A program made the position numbers and the translations under genes. Of a stretch of 64,000 nucleotides of DNA, positions 45,386 to 56,882 are shown piece by piece (the stretch's first letter is position 1; every line of letters starts with the position of its first letter). Source of the DNA: Ascidiella aspersa (Eukaryota); assembly GCA_963924565.1 (NCBI GenBank), contig OZ004613.1, positions 21,266,001 through 21,330,000 on the forward strand, given 5' to 3'. Below the pieces are notes generated by a model. It had not been told where the DNA came from. It searched no databases and saw only the letters and a list, made by a program, of their open reading frames with translations.

Positions 45386-46899
45386 GTTTATTAACGGTGG
45401 ACTGTTAACTTTTAAAAATGTAATATTTTGATGAAAAATACCTGCATCACATCAAGGTTAAAAATGTGTTAATCTGATATCCGATTGTGCCAGCAAGAAG
45501 GCAGTTCAAGGGAATGAAAAGGTTATCAGGTGTTGTGTTAGCGCATAGCCATCAGCCACTGCGGAAAGTATGGCAAGTTCACCCGGGATTTTTTTTAACC
45601 TTTTAAAAGTCCACCCTAAAAAAAATCTTAACTGCAACCCAATTATGTGAAACACCTGTGCACCCTTAATTATCGCATTGGTATATACGTTTAAAGTGTA
45701 ACGTATGCAATAAAGAGTGCATTGGGAAATGATTAAGTCCACCTGGAAAATTGAAAGTGCACCCGGTAACACAGTTTTTTTTAGGTGGTGCACCCATGGG
45801 TCTTGTCAAGATTTGTCATATTTTCCAGGCTGGGCCATCACTCATTAGTGCCCCAAATTAGTTGTTTTGTTAGGCTGACAAATCACGAGAAGTCGAAAGT
45901 TGGTGATTTAATCTTTATCACGTAAAGTTGGCATATTTCTGGAGGCCTAATGGTGCTTATTTAAATTTGGGGATGCAGATGGCCGAGGTGGCTATTTTGA
46001 CAAACACTTGTAAAAAATCTGGCGCTGTCTAGAATCCTACCACATTTTCGTATCATGTTAATGTCACGTTGTGGATTATCCCTTGCGCAGTTTCACTAGG
46101 GTTCCTCTTTTTCCCGGAACTTTTTTACTTCAGAAGAAATTATATGACTTTTCGTGTTGGTGTTTTTTAAACGCAAAATTAATCGTAGTTGTACTCACTA
46201 GTCTGAAAAGTATGGCAGATCTCGTGGGTGCATGGCTGAAAAAATCCGGGTGATCGGGTGCAACAAAGGTAAAAGAAGTGCTCCTCGGGAGCAATTTTAA
46301 ATTCTAGGGTGCACTTTGTGATTTTCCTATGTACTCTGTATTTCATATTAAACTGTAAACGTATGCCGCATAAGTGTTTTACATATTTGGGGTGTAGTTC
46401 AGATTATTTTAGAGGTGCAAATTTAAAATACCTTTAAAAAATGTTTATTTTAGTCCCGTTTCTCTCTGCAAAAACAACAGGGGGCTTGGTGCAGTCTCGC
46501 AGTGACCTGTTTATGATTCCCATACAATAATAGGTAAAATAATTTTAATGAATTTTTCCGCTGGTAAGCGCAAATAAAGCAACTCGGGCAACGACTTTAA
46601 TAGGTTTGGTAATATTTTTTTTTCCTCATATTAATTAAAAACGACAAGTTTTTTTCAGTTTTGCTATGTTGCCGAAAAACCGAAATTATAAAAAGAAAAA
46701 TTCCTGAGATTCGGGATCGTTGTTTAGCGGGTAATCCCGGGAATTTCCCGTCGAAACATTTTTAGAAGGCGCCAACTTAAAAATCGAAGTGCAATGCGTT
46801 CAGCTGCGAAAGTTTTTGTGAAATTTAAAAAATAGAGAGATTGTAATTTGCTACGTAATTGAAAAAATCTCAGGTGCGCACCTGACACAGAATAAAGAC

Positions 46900-47790
46900 A
46901 CCAAAAGCTAGTCAGCAAATAATTTCTGGCAGATTATTTCAACGTCAAAATAAACTTAATTACGTATATTTTTTTCGAAAAATAATTTTACCACCGTCTT
47001 GAGAATGGACTATGTTTCTTAGATTTTGAAAAAAAAAATTAATATTCGAAAAAATATTAATATTCAATATTAATATTCGCCATAAAAAATAAATTAAAAA
47101 TTTCATCCCAGGTTGAAACTAATTTTTTTAAGTAGCGCAGGAGTAAACCTTTCCAATGATGCCTCGCTTGCTATAAATTTGTTGGGGAGTAAGGGTTTAA
47201 TTCGGCAAAAACCGATATTAATATTCATGACATATCGCGATAATTTTTGAAAGTCTCTAGTACCCTTATTAAAAATCACAATCGAACGAAACTTTCACAC
47301 GTTCATTTTCAAAGGCGTAGTTTGCCAAAGAACAAAAAAATATAAAAAATTTCAAAGTTTTAAAAATTTCATATTAATCTATTAATAGTCCCGATATCGC
47401 GATTTTTCACCCAAAAAACATCCGACCACAATAGGCACAAATAATTTTCATCCCACCATAAAATCAAACACATTGCATAGACATTGATCTCACCTTTCCA
47501 ATGATGCCTCGCTTGCTATAAATTTGTTGGGGAGTAAGGGTTTAATTCGGCAAAAACCGATATTAATATTCATGACATATCGCGATAATTTTTGAAAGTC
47601 TCTAGTACCCTTATTAAAAATCACAATCGAACGAAACTTTCACACGTTCATTTTCAAAGGCGTAGTTTGCCAAAGAACAAAAAAATTTAAAAAATTTCAA
47701 AGTTTTAAAAATTTCATATTAATCTATTACCGGTGATAGTCGCGATATCGCGATTTTTTACCCCAAAAGGGGTAGTTTGTCAAAGAACAA
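46900..47790 (+). repeat. Left TIR: 247-bp outer domain plus ~1.7 copies of a 345-bp unit
   Basis: Unit start acctttccaatgatg at 47147 and 47492; the second copy decays after 47729. Confidence 0.95.
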
Positions 47791-47975
47791 ATGCTACTTA
47801 TTGAAGATAGTTTCCACAAATATAAAAGATATATTACACTTATTTCCACGCAACAACAGAAATAAGCAAACATACTTTTAAATTTGGGTTATTTTTTGTT
47901 GTTCATTTTTTACCAATTTAAAAGTTTACAAAAAATATTCTTACCAAATATTTGTTCATCATGTGTTGTTGTTTT

Positions 47976-50900
47976 TTAACATTGTTTGCAAAACCAGGGT
48001 TCGTCGTTGTTATCAATTGCCCCTTGAGGAACGTGTGTTTGAACACATTCCCTGTGGAACCATTCCTTACAACTGCTGCATTCTATTAAGAAAAGCGCTT
48101 TGTTATCGGCTAATCTACAATTACAGTAAATGCTAGTGTGTATAGCTAAAGGTTTTCTTGATAAACCTGGTCTATTCCTACGCGTAAAAAATGGAGCAAC
48201 AGAACGATTTAAAACTATTTTCTGAATGTCACTGCGCAATGTTGCCTCTTTAAATATTACCTGCTCTGGTTTGATGCCGGATAGTATTGCAACTGCAAAA
48301 GCTATTGCAAAAGGACCACAATTGGAGCTTCCCTTCTGTTGGCATACCTTGGGAAATTCGAATTTAATGTTTTTAAAATTTTTTAAGTAGACAAGTTTGG
48401 ACAACTTGAATAGATCGTCCGAGTTATATTCGCTATAATAACTGTCGTATAATTGTATGGAATTACTCTCCGTTGAAAAAATGTTGGACGCCGTTACCCA
48501 ATGGTTTGAATGAACATTTATAATTTGAACAAATTTTCCGACAGAACAATTTACTGAAGGAAAATGAAACGGTGTTTCATAAGCATGAATGCTTTGTAAC
48601 CCTCCAATTTGAGGAAATTGTGTTGCCATTATATGCATTACCGAATCAATATGCTTATCGCTTAGCCATGTGTCTTTTGACAATAATTCAAGGTGATCAC
48701 TTTGATTCATGGTAAAACTGGTTTGATATTTTACACCACAACAACGGCGTCCCCAGGAACTAACAGGCAAATTGGAATTACAATCGTGGCCCTTATTCGT
48801 GTTTTTGATTGTCGATTTTCCGCGTTTGTTCGGACTAGAGCTTCTCAAACCCTTTGAAGGAGCTTGAAGATACTTCCCAATAGTCCTATCTGGCCCTGTG
48901 GTTCTTGGCTTCTTAGCCCAGCTTTCCTCTTCCTGTGGCTGGACGACTGCTCTTTTACGTTTGGACTTTTGCGCCAGCCTTATATTGTCTCTGAACTCTC
49001 GAACTAAAGCGACGTTCTGATCGTTGTACACTTGTGCAAATTCGGCAACATTACAAAATTTCTTACCAAAGCACCGCGTTCTTTTTAACTCCTGCTGACT
49101 CTTTTCCATGACCCCTTGTGTCCTATTATCTTTAGATAAGTTTTGATCTGCACTCCTAGACATCTTATTGAAAAACTCGGATGCGCGTTTATACGAATCG
49201 TCCGTTCCATGCCGGCCCAAGTCGTCTAGCATCAAACCTGTCCAAAGTGCAATTTTTGGCAAACAATTGACAGCAAATTTTTCAATAAATTCTAGACAAT
49301 AAAATTCGTTGTGATAATTTGCCTTTGTATCCTTGACTGCCTTTCCTGCTCTGCTGAGGGTTTTACTAAAATAGCTGACAAATGGGTTTGTTGAAATTGG
49401 GGTTTGGTCATTTTCAAGTGCGCTCTCCCCCGCATCCCTTTCGGCAAGAACAAATTGTTGAGAAATATCATCTTTGCGTTCAATTTTGGATTTTAACCAA
49501 TTCCAACTTATTTTTACCTGCATGTCATTTTTAGATGTAAATAAAATTACCATGTGATACAAAATATTGTTTATCGCATCAAGAGATTCCGCGCACATCA
49601 ACAAACCCATCACATACATTGCCTCTTGCCTTCTTTTAGGAAGAAGGCCACAAAGGCTTTTCATATTCTTCATCGTGTGACTGCCACACAAATGAAGAAA
49701 GGGCTTGCTAAAAGTCCTATCAGTTGCTTTTCCTGACACCACATTAAAACAACGGTCTAAATAGGCTTCCAAATCCTCATTCATATAAACTGACAAAAGC
49801 GATCGAATAATTGCCATGCTTCCATCGCAAATGATTTGACGCACAACGGTTTTTCCAACTAACTTATTTTCGTCCGAATAAAACATTTTAAAAAATTTTG
49901 AAATGGAAACGATATTGTGACTGTTGGTCACGTATGTCACAACAGCCAAAGGGGCTTTTCCCTTGTTTGGGTGGCGCACAGATATTTCATACGCGTAATA
50001 GGGCGCTTTTTTTCCCGAAGCTTTAATGACTCCCCCTGTTGCGTCAATGTACATAATATCCGTTTTAGTTCTTTCGTGAAAAATGCGTAAATTATCCAAC
50101 GACCAAAGCATAAGGCTACTTGGAATGCTTGAATGAAATCGAATGGTCCCTGGTAACGCGGACTTGCTTTCTGCACATTTCTCTGCCTGCGCAACCTGCA
50201 TTGCCTTTATCGCGTCGGTCTCGTTGCAGGAAGGAAGTTTTATTTTATTTCCCTCTGCTCTCGCTTGTCTCAAAACGTTATAAATAGGCGCGTTATCGCG
50301 ATTGCCTGACTCTTCCACTTCGTCGTCCAACTTGTCTAAATTTTTTAAGTTAAAGCGGCTGGGCAAAATGTTAGCCAACTTTTCCTGCATGGCTTTTCTT
50401 CTATCACCCTTCAACCTGCATGCAACGATATCGCCTTTTCTGTGCTTTACATCGCCTGTGTAGTTCACCTCAAATGTTTTGTCGGTATTGTTTCGCAAAT
50501 CGATACTAGCTTTACAAGTGCAAAATTCGAACGTACAGTACGCTTTACAATTAAAAGCACGGGTTTTATCATTTTTTTGATTCCAGAAATGTCCTGCAAA
50601 GCCAAAACTACAGAACGGGTTACTTTTTTTAAGTGCTTGCCGAAACACGTCAACCCAATTTTTATTTGTAAAGTTTCGACCAACGACAGATTTTTTTAAC
50701 GGAACCCAATCGGATTCAGAAAGTTCAAACGTATGTTGTTTTAATATATCTTTTTTAGGGACCCAAAACTCGCAACTACTATTTTCAGACAACGCTGACT
50801 CGTTTCCGTCACAAGACGACACATTGCCAATATAACCACTTTCATAAAACACGGGTATAGCACAAAGCAAATTATCACTGATATCAACATCCGAAGCATT

Positions 50901-51659
50901 GCTGCTGCTGCCACAACTGCCCTCGTACAACACAGCGCCATTTGTACTACAACATTCCACAACGGACAACCGCTCCTGACCCAGCACCTTGTTAAATTCA
51001 TCACCATGTTTAGCAAAAAAACCCTTAAGCTTACGAACTTCACCTCTAATTTGTTTTTTTGAAACATTTTTGGCTTTCAATTTACCTAACAAAGTTATCC
51101 AGCTACTACCACACGCAGGATCGAAATCGAACGATTCAATGGCGACTTTTATCGACGTAATTTTGTTATCTCGTGTAACGTCGTTACTCTCATTTTTCAA
51201 AACAACGTCTAATTTATCCATGCGAGGAAAACTATCACTGATGTCAAAATCCGAAGCATTGCTGCTGCTGCCACAACTGCCCTCGTACAACACAGCGCCA
51301 TTTGTACTACAACATTCCACAACGGACAACCGCTCCTGACCCAGCACCTTGTTAAATTCATCACCATGTTTAGCAAAAAAACCCTTAAGCTTACGAACTT
51401 CATCTCTAATTTGTTTTTTTGTAAATTTTTTTGTTTTTAGTTTACCTAACAAAGTTATCCAGCTACTACCACACGCAGGATCGAAATCGAACGATTCAAT
51501 GGCGACCTTTATCGACTTTATCTTATCATCATTCGGTACTGTACTAAGGGCACCGCCATAAATTCGTTGAATCTCTCTGCAAAAATAATAATCTGTTAAA
51601 GCACTCGTGGGTTCGAGCTCATTGTTCGATGGAACCGAGGTCGTTGCTCCAACGGTCCT
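47976..51659 (-). CDS. MULE transposase fused to a Ulp1/C48 peptidase and a PHD finger (large terminal exon)
   Basis: The open frame extends 69 codons upstream of the listed TTG start to a splice acceptor at 51660; first in-frame ATG is at 51221 (1081 aa). Putative Zn/DNA-binding region CKAYCTFEFCTC..VKH; DDE core YIDATGG, IICDGSMAII, CGSH (CxxH), RTQGVMEKSQQELKR; Ulp1-like WLSDKHID, NHWVT, LYDS, QQKGSSNCGPFAIAFA; terminal PHD CNC..ECSSCKEWFHREC..WFCKQC. Confidence 0.9.
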   Translation of the reverse strand, partial: RTVGATTSVPSNNELEPTSALTDYYFCREIQRIYGGALSTVPNDDKIKSIKVAIESFDFDPACGSSWITLLGKLKTKKFTKKQIRDEVRKLKGFFAKHGDEFNKVLGQERLSVVECCSTNGAVLYEGSCGSSSNASDFDISDSFPRMDKLDVVLKNESNDVTRDNKITSIKVAIESFDFDPACGSSWITLLGKLKAKNVSKKQIRGEVRKLKGFFAKHGDEFNKVLGQERLSVVECCSTNGAVLYEGSCGSSSNASDVDISDNLLCAIPVFYESGYIGNVSSCDGNESALSENSSCEFWVPKKDILKQHTFELSESDWVPLKKSVVGRNFTNKNWVDVFRQALKKSNPFCSFGFAGHFWNQKNDKTRAFNCKAYCTFEFCTCKASIDLRNNTDKTFEVNYTGDVKHRKGDIVACRLKGDRRKAMQEKLANILPSRFNLKNLDKLDDEVEESGNRDNAPIYNVLRQARAEGNKIKLPSCNETDAIKAMQVAQAEKCAESKSALPGTIRFHSSIPSSLMLWSLDNLRIFHERTKTDIMYIDATGGVIKASGKKAPYYAYEISVRHPNKGKAPLAVVTYVTNSHNIVSISKFFKMFYSDENKLVGKTVVRQIICDGSMAIIRSLLSVYMNEDLEAYLDRCFNVVSGKATDRTFSKPFLHLCGSHTMKNMKSLCGLLPKRRQEAMYVMGLLMCAESLDAINNILYHMVILFTSKNDMQVKISWNWLKSKIERKDDISQQFVLAERDAGESALENDQTPISTNPFVSYFSKTLSRAGKAVKDTKANYHNEFYCLEFIEKFAVNCLPKIALWTGLMLDDLGRHGTDDSYKRASEFFNKMSRSADQNLSKDNRTQGVMEKSQQELKRTRCFGKKFCNVAEFAQVYNDQNVALVREFRDNIRLAQKSKRKRAVVQPQEEESWAKKPRTTGPDRTIGKYLQAPSKGLRSSSPNKRGKSTIKNTNKGHDCNSNLPVSSWGRRCCGVKYQTSFTMNQSDHLELLSKDTWLSDKHIDSVMHIMATQFPQIGGLQSIHAYETPFHFPSVNCSVGKFVQIINVHSNHWVTASNIFSTESNSIQLYDSYYSEYNSDDLFKLSKLVYLKNFKNIKFEFPKVCQQKGSSNCGPFAIAFAVAILSGIKPEQVIFKEATLRSDIQKIVLNRSVAPFFTRRNRPGLSRKPLAIHTSIYCNCRLADNKALFLIECSSCKEWFHRECVQTHVPQGAIDNNDEPWFCKQC
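50874..51515 (-). repeat. In-frame tandem duplication (360-bp period) of a ~94-aa N-terminal module of the transposase
   Basis: 50874-51155 and 51234-51515 are near-identical; both encode IKVAIESFDFDPACGSSWITLLGKLK...NGAVLYEGSCGSSSNASD.DISD. Confidence 0.95.
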
Positions 51660-52430
51660 CTACAAGAAGACAGAGTTAGACGATCCAATCTAAACTACTA
51701 AAGTATTGAGGACAATACAGAGTTGAACCACAGCACTTACCACAGGCTTGGAGTCCTCCTGTTTTAGCCCGCTGGTCGAAGGAGCACATGTCCGTGCTCC
51801 AACGGTACTCTACAAGAAGACAGAGTTAGACGATCCAATCTAAACTACTAAAGTATTGAGGACAATATAGAGTTGAACCACAGCACTTACCACAGGCTTG
51901 GAGTCCTCCTGTTTTAGCCCGCTGGTCGAAGGAGCACATGTCCGTGCTCCAACGGTCCTCTACAAGAAGACAGAGTTAGACGATCCAATCTAAACTACTA
52001 AAGTATTGAGGACAATATAGAGTTGAACCACAGCACTTACCACAGGCTTGGAGTCCTCCTATTTTAGCCCGCTGGTCGAAGGAGCACATGTCCGTGCTCC
52101 AACGGTACTCTACAAGAAGACAGAGTTAGACGATCCAATCTAAACTACTAAAGTATTGAGGACAATATAGAGTTGAACCACAGCACTTACCACAGGCTTG
52201 GAGTCCTCCTGTTTTAGCCCGCTGGTCGAAGGAGCACATGTCCGTGCTTCAACGGTCCTCTACAAGAAGACAGAGTTAGACGATCCAATCTAAACTACTA
52301 AAGTATTGAGGACAATATAGAGTTGAACCACAGCACTTACCACAGGCTTGGAGTCCTCCTGTTTTAGCCCGCTGGTCGAAGGAGCACATGTCCGTGCTCC
52401 AACGGTCCTCTACAAAAAAATATAGTTAGA
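51646..52430 (-). repeat. 150-bp tandem array, 5 copies; each is an 81-nt intron plus a 69-nt phase-0 exon
   Basis: Units start at 51661, 51811, 51961, 52111, 52261. On the minus strand each has acceptor tcttcttgtag (tttttgtag at the first) and donor gtaagt. Exons 52409-52341, 52259-52191, 52109-52041, 51959-51891 and 51809-51741 encode (R/S)TVGARTCAPSTSGLKQEDSKPV with point variants. Confidence 0.9.
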
Positions 52431-52444
52431 TGACTCAGCACAGA

Positions 52445-53470
52445 TATGTGATGAATATTAAATATCGGTTTTTGCCGAATTAAACCCTTACTCCCCAACA
52501 AATTTATAGCAAGCGAGGCATCATTGGAAAGGTGAGATCAATGTCTATGCAATGTGTTTGATTTTATGGTGGGATGAAAATTATTTGTGCCTATTGTGGT
52601 CGGATGTTTTTTGGGTGAAAAATCGCGATATCGGGACTATTAATAGATTAATATGAAATTTTTAAAACTTTGAAATTTTTTAAATTTTTTTGTTCTTTGG
52701 CAAACTACGCCTTTGAAAATGAACGTGTGAAAGTTTCGTTCGATTGTGATTTTTAATAAGGGTACTAGAGACTTTCAAAAATTATCGCGATATGTCATGA
52801 ATATTAATATCGGTTTTTGCCGAATTAAACCCTTACTCCCCAACAAATTTATAGCAAGCGAGGCATCATTGGAAAGGTGAGATCAATGTCTATGCAATGT
52901 GTTTGATTTTATGGTGGGATGAAAATTATTTGTGCCTATTGTGGTCGGATGTTTTTTGGGTGAAAAATCGCGATATCGGGACTATTAATAGATTAATATG
53001 AAATTTTTAAAACTTTGAAATTTTTTAAATTTTTTTGTTCTTTGGCAAACTACGCCTTTGAAAATGAACGTGTGAAAGTTTCGTTCGATTGTGATTTTTA
53101 ATAAGGGTACTAGAGACTTTCAAAAATTATCGCGATATGTCATGAATATTAATATCGGTTTTTGCCGAATTAAACCCTTACTCCCCAACAAATTTATAGC
53201 AAGCGAGGCATCATTGGAAAGGTTTACTCCTGCGCTACTTAAAAAAATTAGTTTCAACCTGGGATGAAATTTTTAATTTATTTTTTATGGCGAATATTAA
53301 TATTGAATATTAATATTTTTTCGAATATTAATTTTTTTTTTCAAAATCTAAGAAACATAGTCCATTCTCAAGACGGTGGTAAAATTATTTTTCGAAAAAA
53401 ATATACGTAATTAAGTTTATTTTGACGTTGAAATAATCTGCCAGAAATTATTTGCTGACTAGCTTTTGGT
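52445..53470 (-). repeat. Right TIR: outer domain plus ~2.25 copies of the 345-bp unit
   Basis: Unit boundaries at 53223, 52878 and 52533; the third copy is truncated near 52445. Confidence 0.95.
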
Positions 53471-53607
53471 AATAAAGACTGGTCATTAGTAAATGATAAG
53501 GGTTATTTTTACCAAAAATAAATATCACGTTAGCGCCAGCCGCCAGCCGAACTCTTATAATTATTCGTGTGTGACCAAACTCTATAGAAAACATATTTTA
53601 TTTTTTT

Positions 53608-55053: not shown

Positions 55054-56882
55054 ATGAAACCTTGTGTAAACATTTTTCCCCAACCCAGCATGGCTGATGC
55101 AAAAGTTTCTGTTCAAGTCACAAGTAACTTATGGTTTGACTGTCACCCATCTATGACACAGCTACAATAATTGTTTAACTTATTTTCAGATTTACCTATT
55201 AATGCATATGTGACAATCTATGCTTCAACTTATTCAGAAAAACTTTTATTTGATAGTTTTGCAGTCTATGATACTGGACCAAAAGGTACATAAACTTAAT
55301 TTATATATACAAAAGTACTATGAACATGACGGACTTGTTTTTACTAGGTAAAATTGATTTAGGATTAAGTGAATCAATTTTGGGAACTTACTCAGGTATT
55401 AACCAGATGGGATTGTTAATGTCATTGGAACCTTCAATTTTAAACGAGGTATTTAAGCTACACAAAAAACTTGATGTAAATACAAATTAATTAAACTACC
55501 TACATTTTCAGATTAAAAATGCAAGATTTGTTGTAAAAGATGTGACAAAGACACAAAATATAACACTTGCAATTTATACTGGACGTTACACTTCCATTTC
55601 TGATCTACGCTCAGACAAAACAAAAGTATGTTTGACGAGGCAAGATATTTTACGACTTTACATGTCACCTAGTACAAGAAGAATTCTTATTAACGAAAAC
55701 AAAGTTAAAGGAACACTGTTCATACCAAAAGGAAAGGGGCCATTTATAGGTATTTTAGAAATATGTATATATGTATGTTATGATTTTTGTTTTTAATTAA
55801 ACTTTTTGGTTTTAATAGTTTTAACTCTTGTGCATTAAATCGTTAAGGACATAAAATACACCAATTATTTGGTTAAAAACATTGACAATGCCTATTAGCA
55901 GTGTCAGGTAGAGTGCCTAAAATATTCCTTTTGTTGTATACAAAAAAAAATATGTTCACTAGTATTTTAATAAAATATTTAGTTTAACACACAGCCAATA
56001 TTTTTCTGCAATATGCAACTTTTAATAATATTTTACCAATTATTTTAAGTGCTGACAATTTTATGATCTCAACTACCTTGAATGACAGGTGTGATTAACA
56101 TGCTTGGTGCAGTAGCAAACCCAAATGAAGCAAAATCAGCTCTTCTATCATCGCATGGATTTGCCACCTTAAATCTCAAGTATTTTGGATTTAGAAATTG
56201 GGTGTATCATATAAATATGGAGTTTTTCGAAGCTGCTTTAAATTTCATGAAAAATCATGAAATGGTGAATGGAGCTGAAGGTATATCAGTTGTTGGATTG
56301 TGTAAAGGTGGCCAAATTGCTTTGTGTATGGCTGATTGCCTCAAAGACATAAGGTCGGTAATCGCGATCAATTGCTCAATTGTACCAGTTCATAACTCTC
56401 ATTATTTCCATGACCAGCTATGGCCTGCAGTTGAAGAAGGTAATTTGTTTTCTCTTCCAATGAATAGTAGCAATGTAGTCCATCCTAGAAATATTTTTTT
56501 CCCTCTTACATACAACATGAATCCCACTATGGATAAGAGATCTATGTTTAAATTCTTCAATAAACTTAACATTCCCTTTTTGTTTCTGACAGCTTTGCAA
56601 GATGATAATGTTCCATCTGAACACTTTACAAATCAGGCTGAGCGCCTGTTTAAATTAGCTAAGCATCCTAATTATAGCATTATAAGGTACCCAGGTGCTG
56701 GCCACTTACTTTCACCTGCCTATACTCCTTTTTGTGTTCGAAGTCCCGTTGCCGGAATATACACTAACTTGGAATGGGGCGGCCTAAAAATTCCCCATTG
56801 TAAAGCTCAGGTTGATGCTTGGGACAAAACCATATCGTTTTTGAAAGAAAAATTTTTGCCTGACAAAATCAGCAAACTTTAA
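55054..56882 (+). CDS. Peroxisomal acyl-CoA thioesterase / bile acid-CoA:amino acid N-acyltransferase family protein, 432 aa, 5 exons
   Basis: Exons 55054-55123, 55190-55285, 55348-55448, 55512-55749, 56089-56882, in phase (1299 nt). N-domain GKIDL..GTYSGINQMGL and GTLFIPKGKGPF; nucleophile elbow GLCKG; QDDNV; YPGAGHLL; C-terminal SKL (PTS1). Confidence 0.92.

Follow-up and report, generated by a model that had tools for sequence, protein, structure and literature searches.

A tandem repeat array in a Rehavkus-like transposon of the tunicate Ascidiella aspersa, read as probable intron-exon cassettes of the transposase gene

Comparable transposons and exon arrays

Rehavkus transposons, which are allied to the Mutator-like elements (MULEs), carry a single gene between long inverted repeats that include tandem repeats; insertion produces a 9-bp duplication, the encoded protein has a PHD finger, and a minisatellite lies close to one of the ends (PMC6446971; bioRxiv 10.1101/2024.12.02.626372). 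An element present in a stretch of 64,000 nucleotides of the Ascidiella aspersa genome (GenBank assembly GCA_963924565.1, contig OZ004613.1, positions 21,266,001 to 21,330,000 of the forward strand; hereafter the window) looks like a MULE/Rehavkus-like transposon, judging from structural hallmarks and weak profile evidence. The assignment of this element, at window positions 46900-53470, is made because its 9-bp duplication, its long inverted repeats with tandem repeats, its one gene, the C-terminal PHD finger of its transposase, and the minisatellite beside one inverted repeat fit the published description, with which the comparison was made. Unlike the reported hosts of Rehavkus, which are arthropods and annelids, the host here is a tunicate. 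In addition, the repeats of Rehavkus have been treated as non-coding satellites, and neither an intron-exon reading nor a C48 domain is described in the literature searched. The minisatellite of the A. aspersa element, a 150-bp tandem array, is probably coding sequence, and is the subject of this report.

Ulp1-like (C48) proteases occur inside several cut-and-paste transposons, namely KI-MULEs (Kaonashi) and other plant MULEs (PMC2528002, PMC4948706) and Ginger1 (PMC2836005). The A. aspersa element resembles these in encoding such a protease within a cut-and-paste transposon; however, the protease here is fused in frame to the transposase and to a PHD finger, and the genome is that of an animal. 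Tandem arrays of small phase-symmetric exons, in which exon and intron have been duplicated together and the introns homogenised, are found among the titin PEVK exons and in the spider Flag silk gene. These arrays encode a repetitive, probably disordered segment whose copy number is free to vary. They belong to host structural genes, whereas the array described here lies in a transposase gene and differs among copies of the element within one genome.

The 150-bp array and its homologues

Tandem Repeats Finder gives a 150-bp repeat at 51645-52430, in 5.2 copies with 97% matches. On the minus strand, five GTAAGT donors (52340, 52190, 52040, 51890, and 51740) and six TTGTAG acceptors, with ends running from 52410 to 51660, mark off five pieces of 69 nt and five of 81 nt within the array (Table 1). 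This is the division proposed, at exactly these coordinates, in an original prediction made from the letters of the window alone. The prediction had also claimed that the last acceptor, at 51660, opens the long transposase frame, with the TAG of the acceptor serving as the upstream in-frame stop; indeed, the frame runs from 51659 to a stop at 47976-47978. Together with the homologues described below, this arrangement suggests that the array is probably a tandemly duplicated symmetric (phase 0-0) exon of 69 nt (23 codons) plus a short spliceosomal intron of 81 nt, which would lie within the 5' coding part of the single gene of the transposon.

Copies of the element were gathered from a genome of 308.6 Mb (L-numbers denote loci and C-numbers contigs). 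The anatomy of the array, its conservation pattern, and its variation in copy number are direct observations. Copies that are 98-99% identical have 3.2 and 4.2 array units where the window has 5.2, so that the array copy number, which had been proposed for comparison, does differ (3, 4, and 5) between near-identical copies. Two copies, L031 (C8) and L032 (C7), have a stretch of about 1.17 kb separating the array from the right inverted repeat, and the window copy is without it. The deletion junction lies between 52442 and 52443, inside the intron ahead of the first array exon, and in L031 the missing stretch contains an ATG exon and six small exons. The L031 ATG exon, of 237 nt, begins at the inner edge of the inverted repeat, and obvious GT donors and pyrimidine-tract AG acceptors connect it into a phase-0 chain of 237, 75, 69, 75, 69, 69, 66, and 3 x 69 nt, which leads into a 3684-nt open frame. 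A caveat of the original prediction, that no in-frame ATG was found upstream of the array in the window, is correct, and the cause is this deletion of about 1.17 kb relative to L031 and L032. As read from its sequence, the window copy derives from a fuller one by loss of the 5' end and has a stop in cassette 3; because the ATG exon and six small exons are gone and cassette 3 is interrupted, it would be unable to encode the full N-terminal extension. A shorter protein might start at its internal Met 147. Another kind of derivative is seen in L032 (C7:1198000-1207999), which has lost about 3.4 kb of the long exon (the equivalent of window 48156-51555) and has kept the whole 5' exon region and four cassettes. 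The start codon of its exon 1 is changed, and its structure marks it as a non-autonomous deletion derivative.

Across subfamilies, the period of the array varies while the exon does not. Periods of 150, 149, 142, and 136 bp each contain an exon of 69 nt, with introns of 81, 80, 73, and 67 nt, respectively. In all these subfamilies the introns keep GTAAG and YAG, together with a pyrimidine tract and a CTAAC-type branch site that precedes the acceptor by about 20 nt; thus, the GT/AG signals noted in the window are retained in related copies while intron length drifts from 67 to 81 nt. Upstream, peptides related to that of exon 1 (45-72% identity) are encoded at 20 or more further loci. The 13 copies in which both ends of exon 1 can be traced begin with ATG and end in phase 0 on a GT donor, and although their lengths range from 222 to 309 nt (most of them 237-309 nt), the differences are all multiples of 3. 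The long exon of subfamily B has its conserved coding sequence running straight from the acceptor, with no in-frame ATG, and therefore needs upstream exons.

Longer chains are also present in more distant copies. L056 (C8:9427500-9437450, minus strand), an intact member of another, diverged subfamily, has a 15-exon phase-0 chain (249, 66, 72, 87, 69, 87, 69 nt and so on) that enters a 3789-nt frame. Its cassettes are arranged in a higher-order unit of four exons (69, 87, 69, and 69 nt, with a period of 571 bp) that is present three times over, all in phase 0. In L033, a degenerate member of a third subfamily whose long frame is broken, exons of 66, 72, 81, and 69 nt are still open. Automatic chaining in phase 0 by a simple rule produced no chain at L055, L057, L058, or L059, nor at L033; these failures are taken to reflect degenerate copies or the limits of the rule, and not to be counter-evidence.

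A census of cassette exons found 63 of 65 instances open. Among 43 distinct sequences, frame 0 is open in 41, compared with 25 and 33 for the other two frames, and the third codon position varies most. In 13 of 15 subfamily pairs, the exons are more alike than the intron cores (the others being L009/L013 and a tie, win/A_up), and the exons are free of indels across the subfamily pairs compared. The ratio of nonsynonymous to synonymous differences (pN/pS) in these pairs is 0.33-0.91, which indicates weak purifying selection, as would be expected of a disordered tail. When splice sites were located by a finder that takes no account of frame, exon length was a multiple of 3 in 28 of 28 candidates on the gene strand, as against 17 of 49 in the rest of the window; the 28 come from the 5' regions of three subfamilies plus the window array, where repeat units are not independent, and represent about ten independent exon types. 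An earlier, noisy finder anchored on the branch point gave multiples of 3 for 40 of 52 lengths.

Taken together, these features are consistent with the following gene. In an intact copy, the gene would open with a conserved ATG exon next to the inner edge of the right inverted repeat, continue through small phase-0 exons of 66-87 nt and then the array, and close with the long exon, which encodes transposase, C48 protease, and PHD finger. The cassettes would insert 23-residue modules between a conserved N-terminal domain, encoded by exon 1, and the enzyme body, lengthening the N-terminal tail of the transposase. Because all of the exons are phase-symmetric, the number of modules can change without a break in the frame, and such changes may arise by unequal recombination and possibly by exon skipping. 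Cassette number is 3, 4, or 5 in subfamily A and 5, 8, or 10 in subfamily D. DNA contigs of the same species (runs X1 and X2) include a variant in which two paralogous cassette exons are fused at a joint and the roughly 290 bases between them are skipped (L031:7852-8143), in agreement with unequal recombination of cassettes in the DNA itself. Contigs of run X3, from a related species, include a 154-base stretch identical to one cassette (L031:7665-7818; part of an exon, an intron, and part of an exon), whose flanks are unrelated on both sides.

Ulp1-like proteases in transposons, the combination of PHD finger and tandem repeats in Rehavkus, and symmetric exon arrays in host genes are all known already. 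The literature search found no description of a transposon repeat array as intron-exon cassettes of a transposase gene. The repeat arrays of DNA transposons are usually annotated as non-coding satellites or as transposase-binding repeats, and here one behaves as intron-bearing coding sequence. If splicing is confirmed, the element would show clearly that a transposase can be shaped by tandem amplification of an exon and its intron, and annotation pipelines that mask tandem repeats ahead of gene calling would miss the cassettes. The copies would also, if this reading is true, offer a natural series (3, 4, 5 ... 10 modules) with which to study the role of a repetitive N-terminal tail in a transposase equipped with both a chromatin reader and a ubiquitin-like protease.

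Other readings of the array and of its peptides

Tandem repeats near the ends are a known feature of Rehavkus (PMC6446971; bioRxiv 10.1101/2024.12.02.626372), and the array could be a non-coding minisatellite of the ordinary kind, located in the promoter or 5' untranslated region, its splice-like signals incidental and the protein starting at an internal ATG. The long frame has its first Met at residue 147, and the gene model of a Ciona relative begins just before the homologous domain and has no cassettes. In about 6% of one RNA-seq run, 69 reads were placed and no spliced joints were listed among them, the read depth being zero over exons 1-7 and about 1-2x on the array, coverage too thin to speak for or against splicing. 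Other observations weigh against the cassettes as exons. Within the window array, the exons hold more substitutions than the introns (4 in the 69-nt pieces, among them the stop, versus 1 in the 81-nt pieces). The modules are under weak selection, with pN/pS up to 0.9; the N-terminal 280 residues of the long exon match no database protein; and the gene models of tunicate relatives begin without such cassettes. A minisatellite is nonetheless unlikely, since an exon fixed at 69 nt over four array periods while intron length varies, exon-length differences that are all multiples of 3, a conserved upstream ATG exon, the open frames of the census, and a one-sided array unrelated to the inverted-repeat units all argue against it. 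The original prediction, that phase 0-0 cassettes stand in frame with a C48-bearing transposase, is thus supported by comparison (the ATG exon, the unbroken chains, the fixed 69 nt beside drifting introns, and the differing cassette number of near-identical copies) but not by the RNA reads. We infer splicing from these comparisons, and regard it as likely that the cassettes are spliced coding exons in the intact copies.

If the cassettes are exons, their peptides need an explanation as well. Each cassette would encode 23 residues, among which Ser, Thr, Pro, Gly, Ala, and Lys are abundant, a composition suggesting that the modules are probably disordered. The original prediction found in each exon the sequence LKQE followed by D, a match to the SUMO acceptor consensus psi-K-x-E, and proposed that every cassette supplies an acceptor site, so that cassette number would tune the SUMOylation of a protein with its own deSUMOylase, as a decoy or autoregulatory loop. 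LKQE then D is indeed present in four of the five window units; the third unit contains an in-frame TAG (52061-52059), which had been overlooked, and a G-to-E change marks the second. The catalytic set of the C48 domain is intact, its profile matches SENP1 and Ulp1, and cassette number does vary among copies. However, of 36 distinct cassette peptides, no more than 8 have the acceptor motif in the form [VILMF]-K-x-E, and these belong to just two subfamilies, A (with LKQE) and B (with LKKE or LKME); the expectation that LKxE would be conserved in related copies fails outside these two. Three other subfamilies are without the motif, as are paralogous cassettes of the same gene (L031 exons 3, 5, and 6); the equivalent spot in these paralogues and in the other subfamilies reads PRKEV, PRKMV, PPEKV, LKKVD, or PKKAK. 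Moreover, four residues in a Lys/Glu-rich peptide make a weak case, SENP8, a protease for NEDD8, is likewise matched by the C48 profile (1.2e-6), and related transposases carry a deubiquitinase in place of C48. The SUMO idea is interesting, but it rests at present on those four residues, and a SUMO acceptor, decoy, or autoregulation module is very unlikely to be what the cassettes encode.

Other features of the cassettes are kept across all subfamilies: T-V-G opens the peptide, its middle is rich in Ser, positions 16-17 hold one or two basic residues, and P-x-P-A closes it. A neighbouring exon type of 66 or 87 nt (L031:7944-8009, minus strand, and the 87-nt exons of L056 and L033) encodes an acidic run followed by W-x-[VI]-V, plus S-R-K-S, in three subfamilies. 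The acidic-W-x-[VI]-V motif is better conserved than LKxE and formally resembles a SUMO-interacting motif (SIM) or an Atg8-interacting motif (LIR), a resemblance that is a lead only. It is quite possible, though less likely than not, that the cassettes are real exons whose conserved role lies in short linear motifs other than SUMO sites, such as a basic K-K...P-K-P nuclear localisation signal or a multivalent docking surface for host factors; the features kept in all subfamilies and the neighbouring acidic exon favour such a role, whereas the case for it is drawn purely from sequence patterns and constraint is weak. Still more speculative, and very improbable as a whole, is a model in which the copy-number-variable multivalent tail, which in some subfamilies would place SUMO acceptors beside the SIM- or LIR-like acidic-hydrophobic exon, acts together with C48 and a methyl-lysine-reading PHD finger on SUMO-dependent silencing of transposons by the host, as an anti-silencing module dosed by cassette number.

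The transposon and its long exon

The features of the window copy are collected in Table 1. The 345-bp tandem repeats are present in both arms of the element, and their number varies among copies. The array of the window copy is confined to one side. L032 shares the termini of the window copy and is flanked by a different 9-bp duplication. Derivation of the array from the inverted-repeat units, or its identity as a transposase-binding repeat, was considered and rejected, given this one-sided position and the finding that array and inverted-repeat units have no 9-mer in common.

Table 1. Features of the transposon in the window copy (window coordinates)
Feature	Position	Strand	Basis or remark
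Left copy of 9-bp target-site duplication	46891..46899		Identical 9 bases at 53471-53479
Left terminal inverted repeat, with 345-bp subterminal tandem repeats	46900..47729		830-nt arms, 100% complementary
Long last exon, 1227 codons plus stop (stop 47976-47978)	47976..51659	-	Translation; 99% identical to intact copy L031
C-terminal PHD finger, residues 1179-1227	47979..48125	-	Pfam PHD, 2.7e-6
C48 (Ulp1/SENP-like) cysteine protease	48261..48782	-	Weak Pfam match plus profile of 27 homologues; H1053, D1072, Q1107/1108, C1114 present
Five tandem cassettes (probable exons and introns)	51660..52409	-	Tandem Repeats Finder, donor/acceptor positions, homologous cassettes elsewhere
Predicted cassette exons (69 nt)	52409-52341, 52259-52191, 52109-52041, 51959-51891, 51809-51741	-	
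Predicted cassette introns (81 nt)	52340-52260, 52190-52110, 52040-51960, 51890-51810, 51740-51660	-	
In-frame TAG in third cassette exon (52109-52041)	52059..52061	-	Replaces Q codon of other units
Leftover 3' end of intron preceding first array exon	52410..52442	-	L031 homology stops at 52442, 345-bp repeats begin at 52443
Right terminal inverted repeat	52641..53470		830 nt; 345-bp repeats across 52443-53223
Right copy of 9-bp target-site duplication	53471..53479		Matches left copy 46891-46899

The long exon of the window copy is intact. Its transposase core contains D539, D612, and C-x-x-H at 658-661, and these D, D, C, and H residues are invariant in alignment A2. A single homologue has a sub-threshold Pfam MULE match (E 0.0014), and the third acidic residue of a putative MULE-type DDE core was not located. 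Toward the C-terminus, the alignment underlying the C48 profile has invariant H, Q, and C and a nearly invariant D, corresponding to a His-Asp-Cys triad with an oxyanion Gln. The profile matches SENP1 (3.7e-9) and Ulp1 (3.4e-7) and also SENP5, and because it matches SENP8 in addition to the SUMO proteases, the substrate of the protease cannot be read from the sequence. The PHD profile matches the solved PHD fingers of PHF2, PHF8, DIDO1, and BPTF, down to 5e-15. Pfam gave nothing significant for exon 1 or for the N-terminal 280 residues of the long exon.

In database searches, the core and C-terminus of the protein matched one Styela clava protein and one unnamed protein only. A scan of the full library returned 3983 relatives of the transposase at E up to 0.001, the closest named ones being from tunicates and fish, and many of these relatives carry other short tandem peptide repeats. 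Three relatives, P0020, P0026, and P0037, have a ubiquitin C-terminal hydrolase (UCH) domain at the C-terminus in place of C48, an exchange that suggests repeated pairing of the transposase with proteases for ubiquitin-like modifiers. Because some of the relatives are in fish, membership of the Zisupton/KDZ group was considered. That group, like the present one, occurs in fish and other animals and has a large transposase with cysteine clusters, and fish are among the closest named relatives of this protein. It was rejected: target duplications of Zisupton are 8 bp (PMC12730594), compared with 9 bp here, and about 35 family members scanned gave no KDZ/CxC Pfam match.

The long exon also contains a tandem duplication of its own. 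In the N-terminal segment (window 50790-51520, minus strand), a coding unit of about 120 codons is present twice, with 90 of 100 residues identical between the copies. The same duplication occurs in L015, L016, and L021 (C3, around 31.288 Mb), where one copy has 2.8 units with a period of 363 bp; it is a second copy-number-variable coding repeat in the transposase gene.

Beyond the right end of the transposon, window 56082-56882 (plus strand) contains a single-exon gene for a BAAT / acyl-CoA thioesterase-like hydrolase of 266 amino acids, whose best named matches, in keeping with a tunicate host, are from the tunicates Clavelina lepadiformis and Ciona savignyi at 43-46% identity.

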